Source: Neoconidiobolus thromboides FSU 785
Taxonomy: Eukaryota; Fungi; Entomophthoromycota
Direction of reading: 5' to 3'
DNA length: 38,853 bases
Assembly: GCA_025603075.1 (NCBI GenBank)
Contig: MU626439.1
Coordinates: 1-38,853, forward strand
In this document: in pieces, positions 2,222 through 35,740 of the stretch
Layout: each line of letters starts with the position of its first letter
Position numbering within the stretch: the stretch's first letter is position 1
Position numbers and translations under genes: made by a program
The notes under the pieces: generated by a model
Seen by the model: the letters and a program-made list of their open reading frames with translations, nothing else
What the model was told of the DNA's origin: nothing
Databases searched by the model: none

Positions 2222-5200
2222 ATGGCCCCGAACACCACAAGCACACAAAGTGATAATTTCCAATACCCTGATTTACAGACCATTACCCGTCATCATATTG
2301 AAGGCTTTAACAATATTTTTACATGTGATCGCCCTAATGATACCCGTGGTATCCTTGACCTTGCTATAAAAAACATCCGACCCAAAATATTTTATGATGG
2401 TAGTACATTAACAGAACGAGTTAAAGGGAATCGAATTAAAATTTGGATCGAAAATGTTAGTATTTCTCGTCCAGTACTTTCGGATCGAGAAAAATATTCT
2501 TCAGATCGATTGGTTTATCCAAGTGAATGTAGAGAAAGAAGAACTACCTATGCTGGTGCTATTAGTGCTAAACTTTGTTATCAAATTAATGATGGACCTA
2601 TAATAAGTGAACCTAAAATTTTAGGCCAAGCTCCTATTATGATTAAATCAAGTAAATGTAACTTGTATAAATTTGGACCCAAAAAATTGGTGAGTAAACA
2701 TGAAGAATCCGAGGAAATGGGAGGTTATTTTATTATTAATGGGATTGAAAAAATTATCCGTTTGTTAATTGCACCTAGAAGAAATATTGTAAGTTTATTG
2801 TTTTACTATTTTTTAAGCTAGTATTTAATTCTTTTTTTTATTAGGTAACTTTATTAGTTCGACCTTCTTTCAGTAATCGTGGGTCTAATTATTCTAATTA
2901 TGGTGCTGTTATTAGATGTGTAAGAGATGATGAAACTTCATCTACAATTACAGTTCATTATCTTACAGATGGTAACTGTGTTGTTAAATTTTATTATAGA
3001 AAACAAGAATACTTAGTACCAGCAATGATTGTATTAAAAGCGTTTTTAGAAGTTAGTGATAAAGATATTTTTGATGCCATTGTTAAAGAAGATATTGATA
3101 ATTCCTTTTTAATTGATCGCGTTGAAGTTTTATTAAGAAGTTTTAAAGAATATAATGTGTTTACTAATAAGCAATGTTTGGAATATTTAGCTAGTAAATT
3201 TCGAGTAGTTATGGACGTAGATGATGGTTTACCATTACATGAAATTGGAAAAGTATTATTAAAAGATTTGATATTTGTTCATTTAAATAATAATCTTGAT
3301 AAATTTAATTTATTAATTCATATGATTAGTAAATTATATGCTTTAGCTGCAGGTAAAGTTTGTGCAGATAATCCAGATTCTCCTCAATTTCACGAAGTTT
3401 TATTGGGTGGTCAGTTATACAATGCTATCTTAAAGGAAAGAATTGATGATTATTTAAATAACATTAAAATAGCTTTAACTCTAGATCATCGTCGTAAAAA
3501 TAGTACAGCGGATATAATGAAAAAAAATTATATCAATACGATTATTAACAGAATTAATTCAGATATTGGTAGTAAATTACATTTCTTTTTAGCAACAGGA
3601 AATTTGGTTAGTAAATCTGGATTGGATCAAATGCAAGTAGCAGGTTACGTTATTGCTGCAGAAAAATTAAATTTTCTACGTTATATTTCTCACTTTCAAT
3701 GTATTCATCGTGGTGCTTTCTTTGCTGAATTAAAGACAACCTCAGTACGTAAATTATTACCAGAAGCATGGGGATTTTTATGTCCAGTACATACACCGGA
3801 TGGTTCTCCTTGTGGTTTATTAAATCATTTAGCTCATAAATGTCACATTGTTACTAGATTTCCAAATGTTAATAATGTATTAAACGTATTAGTTACCCTT
3901 GGTGTTACACCAATTACTAGTATTTATACTGGTACAAAAGATTCAATTTCAGTTCAATTAGATGGTAAATTAATTGGATATTGTAATATAGAAGATGCAT
4001 TACTTATTGCTAAACAATTAAGAAAAATCAAAATTAATGGATCTAATGATATACCATTGGATTTAGAAATTGGTTATATACCCCCAAGTAATGGTGGACA
4101 ATATCCTGGATTGTATTTATTTTCATCACCATCACGTATGACACGACCAGTTAAATACATTGAAAATGGAAAACAAGATATTATTGGACCATTTGAGCAA
4201 GTTTATATGGAAATTGCATGTATGAAAGAAGATATTGTACCTGGTATAACTACTCACATTGAATATACACCAACTAATATATTAAGTGTTGTTGCTAATT
4301 TAACTCCATTTTCAGATTTTAATCAAAGTCCACGTAATATGTATCAATGTCAAATGGGTAAACAAACTATGGGTACACCAGCACAAGCATTAAAATATAG
4401 AACTGATAATAAATTATATCGATTACAAACTGGACAATCTCCAATTGTTCGTCCTAAATTACATAATAATTATGCTTTAGATGAATTTCCTAATGGCACT
4501 AATGCTGTTGTATGTGTTATTTCATATACTGGTTATGATATGGAAGATGCTATGATATTAAATAAATCATCTCATGAAAGAGGATTTGGTTATGGTACTG
4601 TTTATAAAACAGAAGTTATTGATTTGGAAGAAAATTTAAATCGAGGTGAAGTTAGAACAGCACATTTTGGATTTGCACCTGGAAGTAAAGTAGCACCTTC
4701 TACCAATGATACATTAGATAAAGACGGTTTGCCTTTTATTGGGGCTAAATTAACAACTGGTTCTGCTTTATATGCGGTTCATAACCATATTACTAATAAA
4801 ACTAAGATTATTAAATATAAATCAAGTGAAGATGCTATTATTGATGACGTCATTTTAACTGGTAGTCCATTGGGTAATCGAGAATTAACTAAATTAATCA
4901 TTAAATTTCGAGTACCTAGATCTCCAATTATTGGCGATAAGTTTTCATCTCGACATGGTCAAAAAGGTGTATGCAGTCAAAAATGGCCAGCTATTGATAT
5001 GCCCTTTTCAGAATCTGGTATTCAGCCAGATATTATTATTAATCCACATGCTTTCCCATCTCGAATGACTATCGGTATGTTTGTTGAAAGTATGGCAGGT
5101 AAAGCAGGAGCTTTACATGGTTTAGAACAAGATGCTACACCATTTACATTTAATGAAAAAGACACAGCAACAGATTATTTTGGTGAACAATTGATTAAAG

Positions 5201-5806
5201 CAGGTTATAATTATTATGGTAATGAACCAATGTATTCGGGTATTACTGGTGAAGAATTCAAAGTGGATATTTATCTTGGAGTAAGTGATCTTATCATTTA
5301 TTATTACTATTTATTTATTTGTTATTAGGTGGTCTATTACCAACGTTTAAGACATATGGTTTCAGATAAATACCAAGTGAGAGCAACTGGTCCTGTTCAT
5401 GCATTAACTCAACAACCAATTAAAGGGAGAAAGAGGGCAGGTGGTATTCGATTTGGTGAGATGGAAAGAGATTCTTTATTGGCTCATGGAGTTTCCTTTT
5501 TATTACAAGATAGATTAATGAATTGTTCGGATTATTCTCAGGTAAAATAGTTTTTATTTTTTTACTTTTTTTAATTTTTTTTAATTATTATTATTTTATT
5601 AGGTTTATGTTTGCCGTACATGTGGTTCCTTTTTATCAACATTATCTATTAGTAATAACAAGTTAAATAACAAACGTCATTTACAATGCCGTACTTGTTT
5701 AGAAAATTCTTCCATTGATTTAATTGCTATACCTTATGTATTTAGATTTTTAGCTACTGAATTAATGGCTATGAATATTAAATTGAATTTAGCAATTACT
5801 GAATAA
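2222..5806 (+). CDS. RPA2: RNA polymerase I second-largest subunit (Rpa135/RPA2); exons 2222-2788, 2845-5280, 5329-5541, 5603-5806; ~1139 aa
   Basis: Pol I-type motifs [77 protein letters not shown] and a C-terminal CxxC...CxxC. Three phase-0 GT-AG introns join the ORF-track pieces. Confidence 0.97.
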
Positions 5807-6095
5807 GTTAAAAAGAAAGCGGAGTTGTAAGACAATATGAAGTTGGTGATACTTTTTTATAGATAGATTAGTTATTATTTTTCATTCTCTTTTTTATTAA
5901 CTATTTTTATTGCATTTAAAATAAAAATAGTATTAAAAATTTAATTTTGATTTTAAATTTATAAAAATAGTTTAATAAAAATAGAAAATTTTATTTAATT
6001 ATTTTTTAATAATTTAAAAGCATTACTTTTTTTTAAAAATAAATTCCTTACTCACATCCAATCCTACTTATCCATTAAAAACATTGTTTCTTACT

Positions 6096-9000
6096 TTAAT
6101 TAAACTCATGATATTTTGGACATTTACGATTTGTTTTCATATGACCCAATTCACCACAATTGCCACATTTACGCTAAAATAAAGTAATTATAATTAATAT
6201 ACAACAAAAATCCATTCAATAAATTCTGCTTACAATCAATTCTTTTTTACCCCTTGGGGCTAAATGAGAAGGAATAGTACCACCTTGAGTAGCTTCCTGT
6301 GCTTTTAATTTATTTAATCTTCTTTCTTTTGAATTTTTAACTTTAACAAGTTGATCCGCGGTTCTGTTAATCATATTATAATTTAATGATTTTATTAAAA
6401 TATAAATATATAAAATTAATTTACCTTTTTCTCAATTCATCGACAGATATTGGTTCACTAAATAATATATTAATACATTGATATAAATTCTTGTTTGCAT
6501 TAATATTAATTTACTTCAATTTTGGATTTCTAATTGTGTCCCTTCTCCTCATGTACGCTTTAATAACGGCCGGGTGTGTAATTTTTTCCGTAACCCATTC
6601 TTCTTGACCCATTTTACGTACCTAATAATACCTCATTAATACCCCCATTAACTATGAGCTTTTAATCGAAAAACTCACTAATCTTTTAACAATCAACACT
6701 TTCTTTTTACTTAATTCCGATTTATTGGAACCAATAGAACCAGCTACTGAGATATCATCTTCTAAATTATTTGTGCCTGCAATAGACCCAGTTTCAAATG
6801 GTGATTCAATGTGCTTTGGCGAAACTGAAGATTGACGGGAAGATTTGGCTGTTCTTAAATCTAAACTGGGGTCTCTTTTAAGAAATAGAGAATTCTAATA
6901 AAATAATAATTCAGGTCAAATAACATATTAATATTAATATGGGTTAAATTATTGATTGTTATTCTAATACAAATGTTATCTTAAAACTTACCGGTTGATG
7001 ACCTACAATATCTTCATCACTATCCTCTTCAGTTAATTGAAAATCATCTGTATTAGCTAAAAATGCATTCTGAGTATCCCAAATTCTAGTTATCTAAGTT
7101 TAAATAATTTCTCATTAATATAAGTATTCTTTCTATAAAACTTCAAATTTACTTCTTCCCTATAAATTTTTTGTTGTTCAGCAACATTATATCGATGAGC
7201 ACTTTTAGGTCGAGCTTCAATTTCAGCTAATTATTGTTAATTATTGTTAATAAATAATATAAATTATAAATGTTTACCTAATTTTTCTTCAGCTTTTTCA
7301 CCAGCTCTTAAAAAGATATCTTTCATAGAGACTCTGACAAATGAAAATCCTTCTCCACGACCAGTAGGATCCCCCTCACCATATAATTTTAACATAGCTT
7401 TACCCTAAATACGTTTTATTATATTATTATCGCTCTTATCTTTTAACGATAATTCTATTTTACCTGCGTTGCATTAATAAAATTTCTAGTAGTAATCCAA
7501 GGCGCTAATTGTTCTTCAATAGTTAAAGATAATTCATTTTCATCATCTTCTTGTTCTGCTGATTTTCCATACCCTGCATCTTGTAAATGTCGTTTCCCAA
7601 CTAGCATGGATTCAAATAAACATAACTTATTAAAGATTATTAATTGTTAATTCTTTTTTAAAAATTACTAATATTATTTAATTGAATAAAAATTACCATT
7701 TCTGGTGTACACATTTTAGTTAATTCTTCTTCTGTTGGTAAAGTAACATTAGGTCTTAATTTCCAATAACCAACACTTGGTCCAGATCTCGAATACTCAG
7801 CAAATTCCTAATATTAATATTAAATATTACTTACATACTACTATTTCTTATAAACTAAAAACTAATTACTTTTAATTTAGTACGTATTTGACTTTCATTG
7901 TATTCTGGGAAATATTTAGCCAATTTTTGGATTTTTAAATGTCGCTTAGCACTAGCTCTTATTAATCGAAAAGCAGCTACCTAGAATATTAAATTATATT
8001 AATTAAATTTGGACATATTTCAACTATAATAATAATAATAATAAACTTACTTGAAGTCGATTTTTAATAGTTGTAGTGATTCTTCTAGAATGAGGACCTG
8101 GTACATCTTGTTGAGGATAAGTTTGACCAGCCACATATAAATCCGTTAATTCTCGAATGAAATATTTACTTTTCCCATTAATGGAATGACTAAAGAAATA
8201 AATTAATTAATATTATTTATAATAACAAAACATTCCATTTTTTACCGAATTAATAAAAAATCTGTAGCTTTAGGTTTATGATGAAATACAGGTGCTTTTA
8301 ATAAATTATTATATAAACTCATTTTAAATTCCCCTGGCTCAACATCCCCAAAATTCATAAAAGGAGATACATCCGTAGGTTCTAAAATTATGGGTTCCCC
8401 AACATCGGGCTATATTTTTTAATATTATTTATTAGTAATATTATCAAATCAAAATTTTAATTTTAATTCTTACATCATGAATATAATCATCATCTTTATC
8501 TTTTTTACGATAATAGTTCACTAATAAGGATCCCATACCACAATTTTGTATAATAGGTGGATATTCTTCCTATTAATTAACTGATTAATTCAACCTATTT
8601 ATTGAATTTATAATTAATAAAGATAACTCACACTATATTCAACTAAAACAAAAGGAGTATCATCTTTCAAAGTAACTTCTCTATGTTTTTGCATAAATTC
8701 CTCTTTAGCTTTCAACTTCATTTTTTTCTTTTTAACTTTTTTCGAGGGCATACATTTCAACTCAATACCAATAGGGAAATGAATTGGGGGCCTATGCCAT
8801 CTTCTTAAATCATTTTTAGTCAATCGTGTTTTAAAAAAAGGAGGCTGAAGACGTTGAGCTACCCCTGCATGTTGAATAATAATTTGACCAAAAGTTTGTC
8901 GAATTTTTTGTGCTTTGCCCGATTTAATAGCTTCATAATATAAATCATTCGATAAATTAAATTTATCTAATTGATCTCGTGCCACATTTTTGCCCAACAA

Positions 9001-10443
9001 AGAGATACCCGTAATCCCCATCTTACGTGCTTTCTTTAATAATCGCATACGTAATAAACTAGTTTCATCCCCCTTATTTTCTGGATTCTTTTCTTGATTC
9101 GCTATTTCAAATAACATATTTGAATCATTTAAATCTAATATTAATGGATAATTCACTTTTTTCGCTTGTTCTTCATCCCATGCTATATTTTTTTCCCAAT
9201 TGCCTTCATTTAATTCCTGATTATAAAAACCTAGTGTATTTTTCTATTTAAAAAAATCGAATTATTGTTGATTGATTATTAATAAAATTAAATTACTATA
9301 TCATTTTCTTCTTTATGTTGCTGTTGTTTATTACTATTAAATTAATTAGTATCATTTATTTTTTATTTATAATAATTCGATTTACTTTTCACTAATATCC
9401 CATACAATTTTATTTTCCCAATCTTCTAATTCTAATGGATCATAGTAGTCCGGTATATTACTATTCATTAGTACTTCATCATTAACTTCCTAATTAAATA
9501 ATAAATATATTATTGCTATAATTAAAATTTAATACTTACAGAAATTGTTTCATCGACGACAGGTGGATTCCTTTGCAGTTCACTTTCCATACAAATTTCA
9601 ATTAAATGATTTAACAAATTAGGGGATGACTGAGGTTCATAATCCGCATTAAATAGCAATTGATCATCAATTTCTTTAGTAATAGTAGGACATTGATTTT
9701 TTATTTTAGCCAAATTATTAGTCACTTTTTTAGCAAAATTCAATGGATATTTCTGATTTTTAAAATTCGGATTAGCGAATAGATCCGTAAATTTTAATAT
9801 ACCATGAGGCTCAAAAGCTGGATACGCTTTTTTAACTTCTTCAAAGGTTAAATCTTTTTCTTTAATTATTTCTGTTGGTTTATCTTGAGTTGTAATTGCA
9901 CTGGTAATTGAGTCCACTTTTTTATTTTCTTCTTTCTTATTTACTTCTTTTTTATCTAATTTTTCATGTACTTTCTGTTCATCATCAATATCATCATAAT
10001 CCTCGTCATAATCTTCCTCTTGTTTCTCCTTTTTCAAACTTTGTAAACCTTTTTGATATAATTCTTCATCTCTTTCTGTATCTTCTGCCAATTCTATGAA
10101 ATCAGAATAATCCATTGCACCCTCCATAGGTTTAATTTCATGCAATTTTAATTTATTTTGTTTACTAAGGCTCCATTCTTCTTCTTCTTCCTCTGTTTTT
10201 TTTAAGCTTTTACTATCAATACCAAGACCAGAAACGGAGAACATTTCACCAAGTAAATGACTCGCTCCACTCTCTTCCATTTTTTGTAGACTTTCGGCTA
10301 CTTCCTGAAATAAATGAAGTTAGTATTATTACATTTCTTGCTTTGATATGTTCACTAATAATTCAACTACTTACCTTATCCAAATCGGTTTCTAAATTGC
10401 CTTCCTCATCAATATTACCGAAAAATAAACCATTAAGTGACAT
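6096..10443 (-). CDS. TAF1: TFIID subunit 1 (TAF1), multi-exon, fungal type
   Basis: N-terminal MSLNGLFFGNIDEEG (exon 10375-10443). Central TAF1 domain EYSEEYPP..GMGSLLVNYYRKK and LYNNLFKAPVF. C-terminal zinc knuckle CGNCGELGHMKTNRKCP, then stop at 6096-6098. Many short GT-AG introns, including a 37-nt micro-exon at 9297-9333. Confidence 0.95.
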
Positions 10444-11218: not shown

Positions 11219-11310
11219 AGAGAGCTTTATTTAAAAAGTTTATAAAAATCAATATTTAAGCAAGTATAAGAAATCGTTTTAAATTTTAAAAGTTTTTATA
11301 TAATATATTT
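11219..11310 (+). repeat. ~90-bp diverged direct repeat, copy 1 (partner 19954-20045)
   Basis: Both copies share ttatttaaaaagtttataaaaat.aatat.taagca...taaattt..aaagtttttatat. Confidence 0.7.
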
Positions 11311-11633: not shown

Positions 11634-11737
11634 ATATGGAAATGTATTTTTTGTTTAAGAATTTTACTAATAATCTTTCCACTCAAATAGCACTTAAAAG
11701 ATAGAAAAAGTAATGGAGCCAAAAAAACACCTTCATT
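11634..11737 (-). mobile_element. MITE family copy C (inverted relative to B, ~35 bp away)
   Basis: atatggaaatgtattttttgtttaagaattttactaataatctttccactcaaatagcacttaaaag...aaaaaaacaccttcat. Confidence 0.85.
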
Positions 11738-12273
11738 TAGTAAATTAAAAAATCAACCTCAGTTTATTTCATAAAAACATTACAAGATCTAAAAGTTTCA
11801 ATACTTACTAAGTAAGTGAGTATTTTATTAAGTGAGTATTTTATTAAGTGATAAAAATTAATTATTAAATCTTAATATTGTTTAAGTTATTAACAGCTAA
11901 GTTAATAAATAAAGACTATTATATTATTTATATTATATAGTAATTAACCATAGTTTTAAAGCCAACATTTCCTCCTATACAGATATCTATCAACTTAATG
12001 ATGTATTGATAATACAATTATAACATTAAAACAATCTGTTTATTTGATACTAAATCTTCAATGTTGACTATGAAGGAGTTAATAATATATATTTTTAATA
12101 AAGTTTTGTAGAAAGATGTATCTATTTGCATACAACTTTGATTAATATCAATATATAGATTATATTAGTAAAAGCCTTGCTAATCCGTGAATTTGTGTTA
12201 AATTCAATACAAATTCCACTAACTTGTAACATAAATTATAAAATAATTTAAAACTGTATCAGATCCTTGCTTT
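11735..12273 (+). repeat. ~535-bp near-identical direct repeat, copy 1
   Basis: Base-by-base comparison with 20257-20790 finds 3 substitutions and one 4-bp indel over the ~515-bp core; the 3' ends fray. Confidence 0.97.
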
Positions 12274-12390
12274 TTAATAGAATTTTCAAAAAAAGACATG
12301 CCTATATATTAAACAGCTTAAAAATTTAATGGTAAAATGTAAATGATTAAAACTCAAACGGATAAAATTAGTCTAGAAATCAATATAAAA

Positions 12391-12496
12391 ATATGGGAAT
12401 GTGTTTTTGTATTTAAGAATTTTACTAACAATTTTTTTACTCAAATAGCGCTCAAAACATGGAAAAAATAATGAGCCCAAAAAAAACATCCCCATA
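12391..12496 (-). mobile_element. MITE family copy D, 10 bp downstream of the acyl-CoA oxidase stop
   Basis: TA|TGGGAATG...AAAACATCCCCA|TA termini with the family core. Confidence 0.9.
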
Positions 12497-12506
12497 CCCA
12501 TACTGC

Positions 12507-14748
12507 TTATAGTTTGGGTTTTCTTAAATTAATTTCTCCCTTAAAGTCCCCAATACTATAAGTCTCCCAATCATTAGCAATTGGTGAAAGAATCAGTCCA
12601 TCTGGAATAGCAAATCCATCTAGATAAGTCAATGTTTGCTTTGAAACAAGTTCTATTTGTTGCTTCAATAATTGAGATAATCGACATGCATTAGCAGGAG
12701 TAATAAATTCATTACTCATTAAATAGCCAAAGTCAGCTTCTAAAGTAGAAAGCATATAAACTTTACATAACTCTTTTAAGGCACCTCTAGAATAAAAACT
12801 TTTAGTATCGATTTGAGTTATATAATTATATTGGCTCACCTTGTAGCTTTTGATACTTTTTCATCTTGAATAACACAAGCAAATTCTTGTAAGCTAAAGA
12901 ATTCACCATAGGTCCGAGACAAGTCCTGAACGAGCTCGGATTCTTCCTTCATCCAGATTTGAAAGATATCTTTTCCTTCCTTTCTTTTCTGAATAGTAAT
13001 TGCACCAAGCTAATAAAGTATTAATATAGTTTATAACAAACTTTCTAAATTTACTTGTTTAACACGATTTATAAATCTTAAATTCATAAGGTCTACTAAA
13101 CTATTAAAATCATCAACTTTCCAGCTCTGGGGTGCACCACGGTTGTAGAAAGGAGAGAAATTGAATTTCTTCTGCTTAATATCAGAAAGTAATTCTTTAG
13201 CTGCTTTTTGCATTAAAACAACATTATCCCCTTCTGCAGTAATACACTAAATTTAAAAATTAAGAAAATAAAATTTAAAAAATAGTAGAATTTTACGGCA
13301 TGAGCTGAGCCGATAATGGCAGTAAAGGCAGAATGCTGTAGATATCCTTGTCCACCACACCTTTCACGACCAATAGAACCGCAACGTTCAGCATTCCAAG
13401 TTACTAAAGGTTTAATTGTACAACACAAACGAATTATTTCTGAATAAGAATATTGTTCAGGGTGAGCCCACACCCTCTTCGTATAATTTAAGCCAAAATT
13501 CAGTGCAAAAGTACGTGCCAAAAGCGGTATTAAAGCTTTTTGTTGAAGTTGATATTCAAGGATAGGGGTATCTGATTTTCCTGTACGACCCCCAGCAAGT
13601 CGAGTTGCTGAATATCTTAAAGCTATCGTTAGGGCTAATTTTGCCCCTGATAAGCTCACGGCGGACATACACAAACGACCAGTTAATAGCTGGTCTGCAA
13701 CTTTACCAAACCGGCTATATATGTTAGTTTTTAAATATGTATATATATATATATATTACTTTCTCCGTCCTACAATTTCAGAAGTATAAGTACCGTTAGG
13801 TAGAACATCAGAGTAACGATTTAATAAATTAATTCTTGGGGTTCTAGACAAATTTTTTTAAAAAATATATTAAAAAAAGAAATTGCACTATACCTAACAT
13901 GATCGAATTTCAATACTGCACTATCCACGCCATCTAGGCCAATCTTATTGCCCATTTCACGAATCGTTACCCCTGGACATATTTCATTATTTGGGCCATC
14001 ACGAATTTTTACAATGAAGCAATGAATCCCTTCTTGCTTTCCTTTAACCTCGAGCTGAGCAAACACTATTGCATATTTTGCATGCTTAGCTCCATTACTT
14101 ATCCAGAATTTTTGACTCTTTACTGTTGGGCTATTGATAATGAATTCTTGAGTTTTTTCATCATAAATAGCAGTGGTTTCCATTTCAATAGCATTATTAC
14201 CATACCCTAGCTCAGTAAGTGCAAAGCAACCAGTTGCATCAAAATTATTAACTTCTTTTAAGATCTCGTTATGGCGTTCAGTACCAAGTTTAACTAAAGT
14301 TCCAATAAACTAAATAAGGTGTTAGTTAATAATGAAGAAACGTAAAGTATATTACAAGGTTATAATGTACGGTAATTTTGGTGGTTATTGATTCAGGTGG
14401 AAAACTTGTAACTTCATGAACTACTCAATTATTTATATATTACCATAAAAGATGAAAATTAAACTTACCAGCTAATATATTTAAAGGGTTTTTAGTAAAA
14501 TCAGCAACGTCAATAAACTTTCCTTTTGCAATTGCTCTTAATTGTTCGAATACTCGCTCTTGCTTTTCATGTTGTAAACAATTAAACTTTGGAGCAAATA
14601 ACTCAATATTTTTCTCTATAAATGCTTTTAATCTTATTCTGTTTTCACGGTCATGAAAATCCAGCAATTGATTGACTTCATCTGAATCAAAAGTAGGAGC
14701 ATCAAAGCGCTGACGATTGTTTATAAAGGCAGAAGATGATTTAGACAT
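12507..14748 (-). CDS. ACOX: Peroxisomal acyl-CoA oxidase, 8 exons, C-terminal PTS1-like RKPKL
   Basis: Spliced translation gives [72 protein letters not shown] and [12 protein letters not shown], all hallmarks of the acyl-CoA oxidase family. It ends in PKL-stop. Confidence 0.93.
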
Positions 14749-15549
14749 GAGATTTTCTCAAATATAATGATAAGAAATGTAACTGAGTCACCCTATTTAT
14801 ATACCTTTCCTCACTCTTCTAGAATATTTCTTTAAAACATTTTAAATAGCTTTTTTGCCTTTAATTTATAGTATAATTTTGTAGACATGGATAATGATCC
14901 ATTAAAAATAAATAGCTAACTTTGTTAAGGTAGGATCCTAAGTACATTATTCTTGGGGAAAATAGCTTAATAGCCTAGAATTTTTACCCCAACTTAGCAT
15001 ATTTAAAGCATCAGGTTTAACTTTGATTTAGCAAACAAGTTAGAATGATGTAATAGCGATTAACTTCAACCTAAAAATTAATTTTTTTCTAAGATTGATT
15101 AACAGCAACATAGAGTTTTACTCCTAAAATTTAAAAAAATTACAAATAATGAAAAGGGGATGAAATAGTAATTAATAATGACCTTAAACAAAATTATATT
15201 AACACATCTTGAAAAATAAAATAAAGCATATTAATAATAAATTTTTTTGAAACTTTTATTTGGATCGATATCATTACGTGCTTAAACTGATCTGATTAAA
15301 TACTTATAATTAAAATCCACTATCATGTGTTTTAAAATAATTTTACCACTTTTGGAGTGATCTCTGCTTTTTATTAACTTTAGGAGTAAAAACTATGATG
15401 GCGTAAATCAACCTCAAATAATTACACCATAAAATAAAACTAGTTTCTTACTTAATATAGCTATTACAACTTCTTTATGACCTATTTGGCTGCTCATTTG
15501 AGAATGGCATTTGTGCTATAACTTTAGGCAAAATGTATATTAGGCTTTA

Positions 15550-15627
15550 AAAAATTGGCTATCTAGAGAAGTTGATTATAAAAGCCATGACTAAAAAAGT
15601 TGTGGAAGAGTTGCAACGGCTGTAATC
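15550..15627 (+). pseudogene. Second copy of the putative integrase zinc-finger relic
   Basis: Diverged match to the reverse complement of 1199-1275. Confidence 0.3.
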
Positions 15628-16428
15628 TGATGTTATTTGGATAAACAAACTGTACCTAATTTATTAAGACGATTCAAAAATTATACGAGTGATGAAATTT
15701 TAGAAACAATCATAACTATTTTAATCTATTTTTTATTTACACTATCACAAAGCTTAACCACATTTATTTTAAGCTATAGAAATCAGCTCTAATATAGCGG
15801 CATAAACTTAAATATTATATTAAAATTAATAATCATTTTATTGCTATTTTGTTGTAATAATGAAAAATGTTTAAATCTTTATGTTGAAACATGAAACAAT
15901 AAATGGATAATTGCTTAGATTAATTTGCATTACCTTTGTTCATTTTAAAATTGAGTGTACATACGTAAATAAAGGATAGTGAGTCTTTACCCCTTAATAA
16001 AAATCATCATTAGTTTGGAGGAAGATTAGAAAATATAAAGCTATAAATAATTTTACATCTTTTTAGCTAATGTTTCAGGGTGAAAACATTTATACTTAAG
16101 CTATTTTTTTACCAATTTAACTTATAAAATAGTACTCCGGACTTTTACTTATTAGGGAAATTTTATAAAATTAAAAATGATAGTTTATATTACGATAACA
16201 GGAAATTTAATAATGTCAAATGTTGATTAAATTATTTTATTGGTGATGTACCTGAAATGTAAAAACTAGTATAAAAGCCCTCACAATTTTAATGAAGCAG
16301 ATAAACCATCCTTTGTAAATTATTTATATTGTTTTATAAGCGTATTACTATATTACTAAAAATCATCTAATAAGTCGAATACTATAGCTATAACTATAAC
16401 TATAAATTTTAACCCAAACCAATATAAA

Positions 16429-17679
16429 ATGATTAAGAAATCCAAAAGCCAGGATAAGTTGAACCAGACTAATAAGAGTTCTAACCATATTCCTATATCG
16501 TTTAATGGAAAAGAAAAAGCAGTAGAATCCGCAGCTATTGTACCAAATGTCATGGAATTAGAAATTACAGATAAAGCCAAAAAATATTTCAAAACTAGAA
16601 CACCAGGGGGTAACGGCGCAATAAGAGATCTTATAGTAAGACCACCACTTACTAAAGATAGTATCAACGTTGGTGATAACGATTATCTCTGTATCGCAAA
16701 AGCTGTAGCTGTAACTAACCATGACTCTGAAGTAGTTATGTCAAGCGCTTTTATATCCGATGATGGGCCACAAGGTTTATTTCAGAAGCAACTAGCAGAA
16801 TATATGGGCAAAGAAGCTTCCATGATTGCACAATCAGGATATGCAGCTAATGCTGGCCTTATTCAAGGTTTTTGCAACAGTAAAACCAATGTGTACATAG
16901 ATAATCTTCTACATGGATCCTTTAGAGATGGCTTGGGTTTTGTTAGACCAAAAACACACATATTTAAGCATAATGACGTTAATGAGTTGGAAGAGATGAT
17001 TAGAAAAAATGGTCATGGTATCATTATAGTTGAAAGTTTATATAGTGTAACAGGAGACTTCGCGCCTATTAAAGATATAATAAGCATCAAAAAGAAATAC
17101 GGTTGCTTTCTAGTGGTTGACGAATCACATGGAATAGGATTATATGGACATAAAGGCAGAGGATATTCCAGTTTGTTTGATTACAAGGAAGTCAATATCG
17201 TTACCGCTAGTTTAGCAAAAGCTTTCTGTGCAAGAGCAGGAGTTATAGCTGGGGATAAACTACTTATCGACTATGCAAGAGAACATTCAATGCCTAATAT
17301 ATTTAGTACTTGTATAATGAATTATGATTTGATCCGAATGCATAAAATATTACATAGGATAATAGATATGGATAAAGAGCGAGAACATCTTTTGAACATC
17401 TCAAAAGAGTTTAGAAATTCTTTGGAGCGTTGTGGTGCAAATTATACCAAATCCGATATTCCTTCACCAATTGTTAGCTTGGTGTTTCCATCAGAAAAAA
17501 GTATGGTGAAAATGAACAAATATCTGCTAGAGAAAAATGTATTTGCTTCATGTTTTATTTATCCAACTACACCAATAAACGCCCCTTGTCTAAGATTTAC
17601 ATTGAACTCGGATATTACTATGAAGGATATCAACTATATAATGTCACAAATAACTTCCTATAATGGCTCAAAGTTATAA
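16429..17679 (+). CDS. cqsA: PLP-dependent alpha-oxoamine synthase of the CqsA/LqsA (alpha-hydroxyketone autoinducer synthase) type, intronless, C-terminal PTS1 SKL
   Basis: Motifs NDYL, MSSAFI, QSGYAANAGLIQ, TNVYID..H162, HGIIIVESLYS, GCFLVVD231ESH, TASLAK264AF..RAG, NIFST, VFASCF and RFTLNSD. These run colinear with Vibrio CqsA as I recall it (NDYL, MSASFL, QSGWNANVGLLQ, TNVYID..H, GPGIIVVDSIYS, GCALLVDESH, TASLAKTF..RAG, AIFSS, VFGSVF, RLSLNSD). The family-level call (class II aminotransferase/AONS) is firm; the CqsA subfamily call needs a phylogeny. Confidence 0.85.
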   Translation: MIKKSKSQDKLNQTNKSSNHIPISFNGKEKAVESAAIVPNVMELEITDKAKKYFKTRTPGGNGAIRDLIVRPPLTKDSINVGDNDYLCIAKAVAVTNHDSEVVMSSAFISDDGPQGLFQKQLAEYMGKEASMIAQSGYAANAGLIQGFCNSKTNVYIDNLLHGSFRDGLGFVRPKTHIFKHNDVNELEEMIRKNGHGIIIVESLYSVTGDFAPIKDIISIKKKYGCFLVVDESHGIGLYGHKGRGYSSLFDYKEVNIVTASLAKAFCARAGVIAGDKLLIDYAREHSMPNIFSTCIMNYDLIRMHKILHRIIDMDKEREHLLNISKEFRNSLERCGANYTKSDIPSPIVSLVFPSEKSMVKMNKYLLEKNVFASCFIYPTTPINAPCLRFTLNSDITMKDINYIMSQITSYNGSKL

Positions 17680-19953: not shown

Positions 19954-20045
19954 AAAAGCTTTTATTTAAAAAGTTTATAAAAATTAATATATAAGCAGAT
20001 ATAGGGAATTATTCTAAATTTGGAAAGTTTTTATATTATATATAA
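19954..20045 (+). repeat. ~90-bp diverged direct repeat, copy 2
   Basis: Matches 11219-11310. Confidence 0.7.
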
Positions 20046-20256: not shown

Positions 20257-20790
20257 ATTTAGTAAATTAAAAAATCAACCTCAGTTTATTTCATAAAAAC
20301 ATTACAAGATCTAAAAGTTTCAATACTTACTAAGTAAGTGAGTATTTTATTGAGTATTTTATTAAGTGATAAAAATTAATTATTAAATCTTAATATTGTT
20401 TAAGTTATTAACAGCTAAGTTAATAAATAAAGACTATTATATTATTTATATTATATAGTAATTAACTATAGTTTTAAAGCCAACATTTCCTCCTATACAG
20501 CTATCTATCAACTTAATGATATATTGATAATACAATTATAACATTAAAACAATCTGTTTATTTGATACTAAATCTTCAATGTTGACTATGAAGGAGTTAA
20601 TAATATATATTTTTAATAAAGTTTTGTAGAAAGATGTATCTATTTGCATACAACTTTGATTAATATCAATATATAGATTATATTAGTAAAAGCCTTGCTA
20701 ATCCGTGAATTTGTGTTAAATTCAATACAAATTCCACTAACTTGTAACATAAATTATAAAATAATTAAAACTGTCAGATACCTTTGCTTT
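20257..20790 (+). repeat. ~535-bp near-identical direct repeat, copy 2
   Basis: Matches 11735-12273. Confidence 0.97.
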
Positions 20791-31495: not shown

Positions 31496-32712
31496 TTAAA
31501 GTAAATAAAATCCAGCAAACAAAGCTAATAAAGGGATAGATGAGAATTGAACTGAAGTTAATGAAGCACTAGGTTCGGAATTTTTACTGCCTGAGTCAGT
31601 ATCATTCAATTTGAGATCACCGTTTCCGTTAGAGTTTGTACAGTTAATTGAGCCAGATGCATGGCCACCGATTCTCTCATAAAAAGCTCCTTCTCCTTCA
31701 CAAGTCAAGTTTGCAAAGACAGAAATGGCACCATCAACAGAGATTTGGTTACTTAGATTTAACGTAGCAATACTTGGGTTTTCAATTGTAAAACCTCCAG
31801 CTACTTTTTCAAGACCCTTGATGTCCAATTTCTTTAAATTAGGATTATTAACAACCAATATGCCATCATGAGTAAGCTCTGCAAGGACAGGGAATAAAGC
31901 CTCCTTGAGTTTAAGATTAGTAGTAAGAGTTAAACTTTTCCCAATTTTTTCAAGCTTTTTGAACTCAAATTTAGTATCGGAGCAACCTGCAAGATGCACA
32001 AGGCCTTTGACTTCTTTGATTTCTGGGGCAGAAAATACACTTGAATTAGTGTAATAAACATCACCGCCAACAGTTTCAAGTTTAAGAGCTTGGATTTTGG
32101 CTGCAACATTGTTGGCTTCAAATCGGACTTCACCTTTAGTTTGCTTTAATTTGGGAAAGTTGATCTCTTGAAGATTAACATTTGAAAATAATTTAACTGA
32201 ATCAACAGATTCGAAAGATAGACCATCAACCTTGGTTAATTGAGTTCTGGAGATTTCAAACTTTCCAACCTTACTTAAACCACCGTTAAAAGTCAATTGT
32301 TGGAGTGGAGTCAAATCCTGCAAAACTAATTCTGTTACCTCACTAAGTTTAGGGAAGTCGAGTTTTCCAAGTCCAGTTAAATTAGCAATGGTAATTTTAT
32401 TGGCAGTTTTAAGCTTTGGAAAGCTAATACCAGAAATAGCTTTGTCCCCAGAGATTTTAAGTTCACCTTCTAACTTCTCAAGATCAGAGAAGCTAACTTC
32501 TGAAATACCAGCATTTTTGAAGGTAATTTTACCACTATAAGTGGAACAGCCAGATAATGATTTCAAGTCGCCTTGTTTTTCAATATCTACATCGTCACTA
32601 CAATCAGCTAAATATAATTAATAAAAGTAATAGTAATGTGATATAAAAAATTACATTGAACATATCCTATAGCAAGGATACCAATTAACAAATTAACTAA
32701 AGTACTTTTCAT
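31496..32712 (-). CDS. ECM33: Ecm33/Pst1-like GPI-anchored receptor-L-domain cell-wall protein; exons 32655-32712, 31496-32607; 389 aa
   Basis: Signal peptide exon, then DCSDDVDIEKQGDLKSLSGCSTYSGKI, repeated xFPxLxxVxGxxxI units and a hydrophobic C-terminus preceded by a Ser-rich omega region. Confidence 0.85.
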
Positions 32713-35068: not shown

Positions 35069-35740
35069 ATGACCTTCAACACACTTGAAAGTAACTCCAA
35101 CGAAGCAGGAATAGCAGCAAGAAAGTTATTACGACAGGAAGGGATCGGGACATTATCTACTATTTATAATCCATCACCACAACAGGGTGGTCATCACAAC
35201 CTTGAGAAACTAGAGGCAGGCAATAATTTATCCGGTTACCCATTTTGTATCTTCGACTACTATATTGATCTTAATGAAACTTATGGAGATCCTATATTGC
35301 TGGTATCAACCATGCAAAAAAGCTACCATAATTTCAGTTCTAATCCTAAAGTAGCTTTTACAGTCCGTGAACCTGGGGGTACTAAAATCATGGGAAATAG
35401 TAGATTTTGTTTGATGGGAGAAATAGCACGATTGGAAGAAGAGTTAATTGAGTTAGCAAAACAAGCGTTTTTGAAAAAACATAGTGATACTAAGTTTTGG
35501 TTGGGCTGGAAAGACTTTCAATTTTATCGTATTAAAGTTCAGTCTATTTATTGGGTTGGTGGGTTTGGCAACTCGCATTATATTGGGGATGTTCCATTGT
35601 TGCAATATAAGAATGTTGATACAAGTATATTAAAAAAAAAAGTTGTATTCATCCATAGGCATTTCTTTGGTGGTGTAGGGTTACTTTTTATTATTTTATT
35701 TTTATATTACATCCACTTGTCGCTTCCAATATTGCTATAA
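35069..35740 (+). CDS. CREG: CREG-like / pyridoxamine 5'-phosphate oxidase-fold (split barrel) protein
   Basis: Motifs ARKLL...GTLSTI, GYPF, GDPILLVS, NPKV.FTV, RFCLMG, AFLKKH.D.KFW, DFQFYRI and YWVGGFG. Confidence 0.8.
   Translation: MTFNTLESNSNEAGIAARKLLRQEGIGTLSTIYNPSPQQGGHHNLEKLEAGNNLSGYPFCIFDYYIDLNETYGDPILLVSTMQKSYHNFSSNPKVAFTVREPGGTKIMGNSRFCLMGEIARLEEELIELAKQAFLKKHSDTKFWLGWKDFQFYRIKVQSIYWVGGFGNSHYIGDVPLLQYKNVDTSILKKKVVFIHRHFFGGVGLLFIILFLYYIHLSLPILL

Follow-up and report, generated by a model that had tools for sequence, protein, structure and literature searches.

The 38,853-nucleotide contig MU626439.1 of the insect-pathogenic fungus Neoconidiobolus thromboides FSU 785 (Entomophthoromycota; assembly GCA_025603075.1, positions 1 to 38,853 of the forward strand), referred to here as the window, carries two divergently transcribed genes, one for an acyl-CoA oxidase (ACOX) and one for a pyridoxal phosphate (PLP)-dependent alpha-oxoamine synthase related to the bacterial autoinducer synthases CqsA and LqsA. 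Both genes have complete structures and are transcribed, both proteins keep their catalytic residues and end in tripeptides of the peroxisomal targeting signal type 1 (PTS1) kind, the synthase falls among CqsA/LqsA proteins phylogenetically, and the same pair is found in fungi of two phyla. The reading that we favour, by a modest balance of probability, is that the two genes constitute a conserved peroxisomal two-enzyme module, in which a diverged ACOX1-type oxidase acts together with a PTS1-bearing synthase derived from CqsA/LqsA.

The oxidase and synthase genes

The oxidase gene occupies positions 12507-14748 on the minus strand and encodes 634 amino acids (aa) between an ATG at 14748 and a stop codon at 12507-12509. 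Its eight exons (14748-14469, 14420-14356, 14309-13894, 13843-13760, 13714-13297, 13246-13055, 13009-12840 and 12786-12507; 280, 65, 416, 84, 418, 192, 170 and 280 nt, respectively) are separated by seven GT..AG introns of 45-53 nt. The splice joints 12786/12840, 13009/13055, 13246/13297, 13843/13894, 14309/14356 and 14420/14469 are exact in RNA contigs from four runs, and the seventh, which lies inside a TA repeat, is consistent with one RNA contig of run X2. The exon translations, seen as four minus-strand open reading frame (ORF) pieces, match Pfam PF02770, PF22924 and PF01756, and among solved structures the protein is most similar to human and rat ACOX1, Yarrowia ACOX1/3, plant ACX1 and Caenorhabditis elegans ACOX. 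The protein thus has both the domain set and the catalytic glutamate motif of an ACOX1-type oxidase; the glutamate is Glu426 (codon 13232-13234, minus strand) within TAEGDN, which from general knowledge of ACOX1 we take to be the catalytic base. It ends ...NLRKPKL, with PKL (12510-12518, minus strand) constituting a non-canonical PTS1.

The three Pfam domains, the TAEGDN motif and the peroxisomal tag are shared with the canonical ACOX1/Pox-type oxidases of rat, human, Yarrowia and Arabidopsis, but the window oxidase lacks the canonical TE[LM]GHG..GLETTAT motif that is present in the human, rat, Yarrowia and tomato ACOXs. The corresponding site reads [15 protein letters not shown] and is part of a derived motif, [13 protein letters not shown]...[15 protein letters not shown], at the start of exon 3 (14163-14309, minus strand). 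Five differences in the oxidase are seen in the RNA runs that carry a second organism label, three of them synonymous and two conservative. In run X1 the bin 14170-14356 has a summed contig depth of 634, compared with 10-18 across the remainder of the gene, and this probably reflects a high-depth contig of a paralogue or repeat that overlaps the conserved motif region.

The synthase gene (16429-17679, plus strand) is intronless, and its 416-aa ORF ends ...NGSKL. Translation probably starts at Met42 (16552), giving a protein of 375 aa, as this is where the homologues, the deposited model (P0001) and a Mortierella tblastx match all begin. The 41-codon N-terminal extension (16429-16551) has no counterpart in any homologue, and RNA coverage of the gene begins 5' of both candidate ATGs. 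Pfam identifies a class I/II aminotransferase-fold protein, and the alignment shows that His162, Asp231, His234, Lys264 and Arg389 are all kept, which are the Schiff-base lysine and the His/Asp/His/Arg set of a fold-type I PLP alpha-oxoamine synthase. Lys264 (codon 17218-17220, plus strand, in SLAKAF) aligns with Lys236 of CqsA in structure 2wk8, and K236 is the PLP lysine of CqsA (PMC3376566). The C-terminal SKL (17668-17676, plus strand), a canonical PTS1, directly precedes the stop codon at 17677-17679.

The original prediction had described two real and divergent genes with a shared upstream region of 1680 bp, no copy of a local miniature inverted-repeat transposable element (MITE) family between them, and PTS1-type tripeptides at the ends of both proteins. 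The gene models, RNA contigs and Pfam matches bear this description out, with the qualification that the intergenic region (14749-16551) measures 1680 bp to the ATG at 16429 and 1803 bp if the start is Met42. The MITE copies lie at 11647, 12405, 19341 and 19588, and the intergenic region contains no ORF of note.

Conservation of the pair and its targeting signals

An exhaustive profile search led to a synthase homologue in Mortierella alpina (P0340, KAF9958336.1) on contig JAAAHY010000732.1 (locus L013), where it lies head to head with a minus-strand ACOX, annotated with PF01756, across a spacer of 902 bp. The M. alpina synthase gene (8324-9459, plus strand) ends in SKL. Its oxidase neighbor (4829-7421, minus strand) runs from an ATG at 7421 to an end ...FEAKL at 4829 and contains MTAEGDN, and in a tblastn search the window oxidase matches this locus from 7394 to 5293 with an E value of 1e-98. 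The gene is annotated as a 236-aa C-terminal fragment, and stop-free blocks colinear with a full-length protein reach the ATG at 7421; the M. alpina oxidase is therefore read here from ORF pieces, colinear with window oxidase residues 21-627, and not from a full gene model. When the whole 16-kb locus is compared with the whole window by tblastx, similarity is seen over the pair only, and in the same mutual orientation.

The two linked oxidases resemble each other in regions in which they depart from other ACOXs. At the start of exon 3 they are 69% identical over 49 aa, and in both of them [15 protein letters not shown] takes the place of the TELGHG..GLETT of canonical ACOXs. The exon-5/C-alpha1 region scores 122 bits between the two and no more than 47 bits against any solved ACOX, and the ends of the M. 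alpina blocks coincide with the window introns after residues 281, 485 and 541, giving three apparent shared intron positions. Compared in this way with the solved ACOXs, a set outside which the unlinked N. thromboides and M. alpina ACOXs lie, the linked oxidases look like orthologues belonging to a diverged ACOX subfamily.

Little background synteny is expected between these genomes. The window also carries a gene for RNA polymerase I subunit 2 (RPA2; 2222-5328), and the next-best relatives of its 767-aa exon (3025-5325) are only 70% identical in Entomophthora muscae and 63-65% in Mortierella and Basidiobolus; the N. thromboides lineage is therefore a deep one, and hardly any synteny with other fungi of known sequence is to be expected by background alone. 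The adjacency of oxidase and synthase is kept between distant taxa beyond such a background, as is characteristic of metabolic gene clusters. Among 93 loci examined (1.1 Mb, including 80 bacterial cqsA loci) an ACOX homologue is present in the M. alpina locus alone. Taking as our own rough estimate five ACOX genes per approximately 10,000 genes, we estimate the chance of an ACOX among the approximately 20 immediate neighbors at ten loci to be about 1%, and lower if divergent orientation is required. The other loci by themselves would favour chance adjacency, and the M. alpina locus reverses this reading.

In the synthase tree the window protein groups with Conidiobolus (support 99) and the M. 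alpina protein with other Mortierella sequences (99), and these two groups are the two deep divisions within the core fungal clade. Since the pair-bearing synthases sit in both divisions, the linkage either is ancestral and was repeatedly lost, or arose twice, and both histories argue for selection on the linkage. When metagenomes were scanned with the fungal alignment, every locus recovered was of the bacterial cqsA type (31-37% identity), and no eukaryotic one was added. At none of these loci is an ACOX or acyl-CoA dehydrogenase (ACAD) homologue detectable with the window oxidase, so that a transfer of both genes together from bacteria is not supported. The original proposal that the two genes form a unit, to be checked by synteny across related fungi, has thus gained real support from these comparisons, because the same head-to-head PTS1 pair is found in a different phylum on a contig that shares nothing else with the window; at all other loci examined the synteny does not hold.

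The targeting signals show a similar pattern. In both species both partners have PTS1-type ends: the oxidase ends in PKL in the window and in AKL in M. alpina, and the synthase ends in SKL in each. Among the full-length fungal relatives of the synthase most likewise end in a PTS1-type tripeptide (SKL, AKL, TKL, CKL, PKL, ARL or SRL), with SKL in the window protein, P0002, Aspergillus venezuelensis, A. filifer, P0008, M. alpina P0340 and several further representatives, whereas such a tripeptide is missing from all 128 bacterial relatives. Two apparent exceptions appear from the sequences to be annotation errors. The deposited model of the Conidiobolus coronatus synthase (P0003, KQ964618.1; L001:10901-11174) ends ...SICQDLSY by way of a probably false terminal intron, and the uninterrupted frame reads ...PRPQLLTSKL to the contig end, such that the PTS1 is hidden by the annotation. 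In Mortierella sp. GBA30 (L008:6302-6510) the 'partial' protein P0111 stops at ...KRSS, and the ORF runs on to ...KRSSKL and a stop codon, giving a second hidden PTS1. Because PTS1-type ends are common in the fungal relatives and absent from the 128 bacterial ones, those of the pair are not due to chance, and a peroxisomal location is predicted for both proteins.

Ancestry of the synthase and alternative readings

Relatives of the synthase are present in C. coronatus, Mortierella, several Aspergillus species, Emericellopsis and Dactylellina, as well as in eukaryote-like contigs and bdelloid rotifers, and bacterial proteins of the CqsA type follow next, in the hundreds. By family model as well as by structure the synthase is matched best by CqsA/LqsA (Vibrio cholerae CqsA, Legionella pneumophila LqsA; NF005526; PDB 2wk8 and 3kki). 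In NCBIfam the NF005526 model scores 323.8 bits and the bioF model TIGR00858 scores 219, and among solved structures V. cholerae CqsA is matched with an E value of 3.5e-58, compared with 1e-33 or weaker for BioF/KBL-type and other family enzymes. The ESM Atlas agrees on a CqsA-like protein both by sequence features and by structure, with a TM-score of 0.94 to alpha-hydroxyketone synthase clusters. CqsA-specific residues near the PLP site, DESH and TASLAKA..RAG, are retained.

A maximum-likelihood tree, built without a canonical fungal BioF sequence, splits the CqsA-like group from BioF-like sequences at 100/100 and places the window synthase in the CqsA/LqsA clade and not with BioF, KBL, ALAS or SPT. 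Fungi (100/99) and rotifers (100/100) form one eukaryotic clade (99/98), the sister of which is the bacterial protein P0010 (95/92). At the P0010 locus (L010:9278-10594) a convergent HATPase_c histidine kinase gene adjoins the synthase gene; an insertion sequence (IS) element lies directly upstream of P0010, so that a cqsA-cqsS-like arrangement is found next to mobile DNA. Among distant relatives we also note fusions of the synthase to a fatty-acid hydroxylase domain (P0397, 655 aa) and to an MMPL/RND transporter (P0367, 1195 aa), a possible hint that related subfamilies act on lipids.

Within eukaryotes the distribution is patchy, the gene being found in a few Aspergillus species, some Mortierella, the Conidiobolus group and rotifers. 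The overall GC content and the GC content at third codon positions (GC3) of the window synthase equal those of the oxidase, and the synthase is an old and domesticated gene of bacterial type. As part of the module reading, and with the same modest degree of confidence, we regard it as a eukaryotic protein that descends from the CqsA/LqsA autoinducer synthases of bacteria and has gained a PTS1. We reject contamination or recent transfer, because the GC and GC3 values agree with those of the neighboring gene, the synthase is transcribed, and it shares its contig with RPA2 and a TAF1-like gene. To our knowledge CqsA/LqsA-type synthases have been known only as bacterial quorum-sensing enzymes, and in the literature we found no eukaryotic CqsA/LqsA/CAI-1 synthase, nor any peroxisomal targeting of one or link to an acyl-CoA oxidase. 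The window enzyme differs from CqsA/LqsA in being eukaryotic and PTS1-bearing and in having two thirds of the CqsA-specific columns changed; it also has no adjoining CqsS/LqsS sensor kinase, and has an ACOX upstream and non-coding repeats downstream.

Several observations weigh against the module, in addition to the limits of the oxidase comparison given above. The score of the synthase lies below the NF005526 equivalog cut-off of 428 bits, as do those of all eukaryotic members (304-324 bits; 304-318 for those other than the window protein), whereas the bacterial P0010 (488 bits) and an Enterobacter protein (483) exceed it, and of 44 columns that are CqsA-specific in bacteria, 14 are retained fully and six partly in the fungal clade. 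Because few of these columns are kept and the curated cut-off is missed, the substrates of the synthase may differ from those of CqsA. The pair itself was found at two of 11 fungal loci, and no oxidase neighbors the synthase at the nine others or at one rotifer locus, absence being judged from the synthase side by annotation or tblastn. These include C. coronatus (10 kb upstream), the Logan contig of P0002, Mortierella sp. GBA30 (in which there is no relic), Aspergillus undulatus, A. californicus, A. fumigatus, Emericellopsis, a metagenome contig from JGI and the rotifer Adineta. We note separately that C. coronatus has an unannotated 569-aa ORF (L001:7473-9182) without a Pfam match in a 3.3-kb 'empty' stretch upstream of its synthase gene.

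Expression and the spacer point in the same direction. At 1.7-1.8 kb the spacer is long, its middle is silent, and it shares no motif with that of M. alpina. The ACOX transcript extends to at least 14805, synthase coverage starts in the 16040-16226 bin, and none of the four RNA runs (X1-X4) has any depth over 14918-16039, placing the transcription units more than 1 kb apart. A search for shared cis-elements was negative: the window spacer contains no FarA/FarB-type CCTCGG site, and the k-mers common to the two spacers are not beyond chance and are fewer than in shuffled controls. The RNA data are low-depth assembled contigs that show presence only. In run X1 both genes are covered, at word depths of about 8-18 for the oxidase and about 1.5-6 for the synthase. 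In runs X2-X4, which carry another organism label and show a few single-nucleotide differences, there are oxidase contigs at depths of 3-5 and no synthase contigs; this absence says little, because the ratio seen in X1 would put the synthase near the assembly floor. Runs X6-X8 contain some synthase words, with shares of 0.11-0.13 in a search with the synthase only, and fell below threshold with a 5.4-kb query. Judged by presence in such contigs, expression of the two genes looks separable, and the co-expression that the original prediction had proposed as a check is seen in X1 and not in X2-X4, leaving weak evidence for it.

The alternative that survives best is that the two are neighbors without pathway coupling, independent peroxisomal genes whose adjacency is retained or coincidental, which share at most a fatty-acid-responsive regulation, with the synthase drawing on the general peroxisomal acyl-CoA pool. 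The missing adjacency at nine of the 11 fungal loci, among them the closest named relative and a second Mortierella, is as this would predict, as are the apparently uncoupled detection in the RNA runs, the distance and silence between the transcription units, and the position of the locus within a repeat-rich, rearrangement-prone island. We nevertheless think it unlikely, though deserving of serious consideration. Contigs from two phyla share these two genes and no others, and neutral microsynteny would be expected to retain other neighbors too; the recurrence of an ACOX as the divergent immediate neighbor in a second lineage has, by our own estimate, a chance of about 1% or less; and the linked oxidases share derived features.

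A second alternative, put forward in the original prediction, is that the pair acts in biotin synthesis, with the oxidase yielding pimeloyl-CoA by the shortening of long-chain or dicarboxylic acyl-CoAs and the CqsA-like protein serving as a non-orthologous 8-amino-7-oxononanoate (KAPA) synthase, mirroring the peroxisomal BioF of Aspergillus and plants. There is some logic to this scenario, as a dedicated adjoining oxidase would fit it, the superfamily and chemistry are the same, and the synthase has the arginine that binds the amino-acid carboxylate. The canonical fungal and plant BioF is itself a PLP alpha-oxoamine synthase with a C-terminal PTS1, is peroxisomal and depends on peroxisomal acyl-CoA metabolism, with beta-oxidation implicated in pimeloyl-CoA supply (PMC3713238). 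The synthase, however, belongs to another subfamily, divided from BioF-like sequences by the 100/100 split; its bioF model score is half the TIGR00858 cut-off (219 against 426 bits); and the fungal clade keeps one of 34 BioF-specific columns. In Aspergillus nidulans BioF is associated with bioDA and bioB in a bio cluster. No bioDA or bioB neighbors were found by Pfam at the Aspergillus, Emericellopsis and other loci (L003, L004, L006, L009 and L013), and the synthase is never beside these genes in the loci seen. The patchy, accessory-like distribution of the family is also unlike that of a vitamin pathway, and together with the locus context it rules out that the Aspergillus relatives are canonical BioF. 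A BioF replacement is therefore disfavoured, and we consider the biotin scenario improbable.

Genomic setting and the possible product

The window is AT-rich (approximately 27% GC), and its genes are eukaryotic, with introns. Besides RPA2 the contig carries genes for a TAF1-like protein (DUF3591; 8614-10280), a receptor-L-domain/leucine-rich repeat (LRR) protein (31496-32566) and a CREG-like beta-barrel protein (35069-35740), and none of these four is related to lipid or biotin metabolism. The oxidase gene, the synthase gene and a tail rich in MITEs are exactly what lies between two non-coding direct repeats of approximately 530 bp (11735-12262 and 20257-20779, both plus strand), which share about 99% identity. 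From the end of the synthase gene to the right-hand repeat there is only MITE-rich non-coding DNA, with no ORF of at least 35 aa having known similarity. The repeats are not obviously long terminal repeats, being non-coding, AT-rich and without TG..CA ends. An older and more diverged flank similarity lies outside them (11226-11308 and 19961-20043). The MITE copy directly after the oxidase stop codon (12300-12486) has a summed RNA-contig depth of 1028 in X1 and 94-208 in X2-X4, and these contigs have many loose ends into differing flanks, so that copies of the element must be transcribed from many loci.

Returning to the two-enzyme module, we infer its substrates, order of steps and product as follows. 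Both proteins would be imported into the peroxisome, where the oxidase, together with the general beta-oxidation enzymes, would act as a chain-length gatekeeper on fatty acyl-CoAs or, alternatively, would directly supply a 2-enoyl-CoA. Peroxisomal beta-oxidation generates medium-chain acyl-CoAs. The PLP enzyme would condense the medium-chain acyl-CoA so formed and a small amino donor to give an alpha-aminoketone or enaminone, convertible to an alpha-hydroxyketone-type lipid. Most economically, the oxidase would thus determine which acyl-CoA reaches the PLP enzyme. Enzymes of the CqsA/LqsA family characteristically form a 3-amino- or 3-hydroxy-alkan-4-one in this type of reaction. The substrates of CqsA are S-adenosylmethionine (SAM) or 2-aminobutyrate on one side and octanoyl- or decanoyl-CoA on the other, dodecanoyl-CoA is probably the acyl substrate of LqsA, and the acyl-CoA range of CqsA-type enzymes is C8-C12 (PMC3376566). 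Our best guess from the sequences is that the product is a medium-chain alpha-aminoketone or alpha-hydroxyketone, a BioF substitute being less likely; an alpha-hydroxyketone-type product would fit the phylogeny.

A precedent for the proposed role of the oxidase is provided by nematodes, in which ACOX paralogues are chain-length gatekeepers for pheromones made in peroxisomes (PMC12334608). The ascaroside-gating paralogues of C. elegans are likewise ACOX1-type peroxisomal oxidases, and C. elegans ACOX structures are among the matches of the window oxidase. They gate the chain length of a secreted signal molecule (PMC12334608), a role that is only proposed for the window oxidase; the partner of the latter is a PLP synthase instead of the ascaroside machinery, and physical linkage of the genes is a feature of the fungal pair. 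A broader scenario, which we offer tentatively and regard as doubtful, is that some fungi use the pair, with its anciently transferred bacterial cqsA, to make CAI-1/LAI-1-like alpha-hydroxyketone or alpha-aminoketone signals in peroxisomes, either for signalling among themselves or for listening to, mimicking or jamming CqsS/LqsS quorum sensing in soil or in insect hosts.

The presence of the pair across two phyla provides a concrete hypothesis that is cheap to test; both N. thromboides and M. alpina are culturable, and the latter is used in industry to produce lipids. Were an alpha-hydroxyketone-type lipid to be made, it would belong to a new class of signals in fungi and might serve communication between kingdoms, and if the product is KAPA, the pair would represent a new route into biotin synthesis. 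Either outcome would add a function to fungal peroxisomes.

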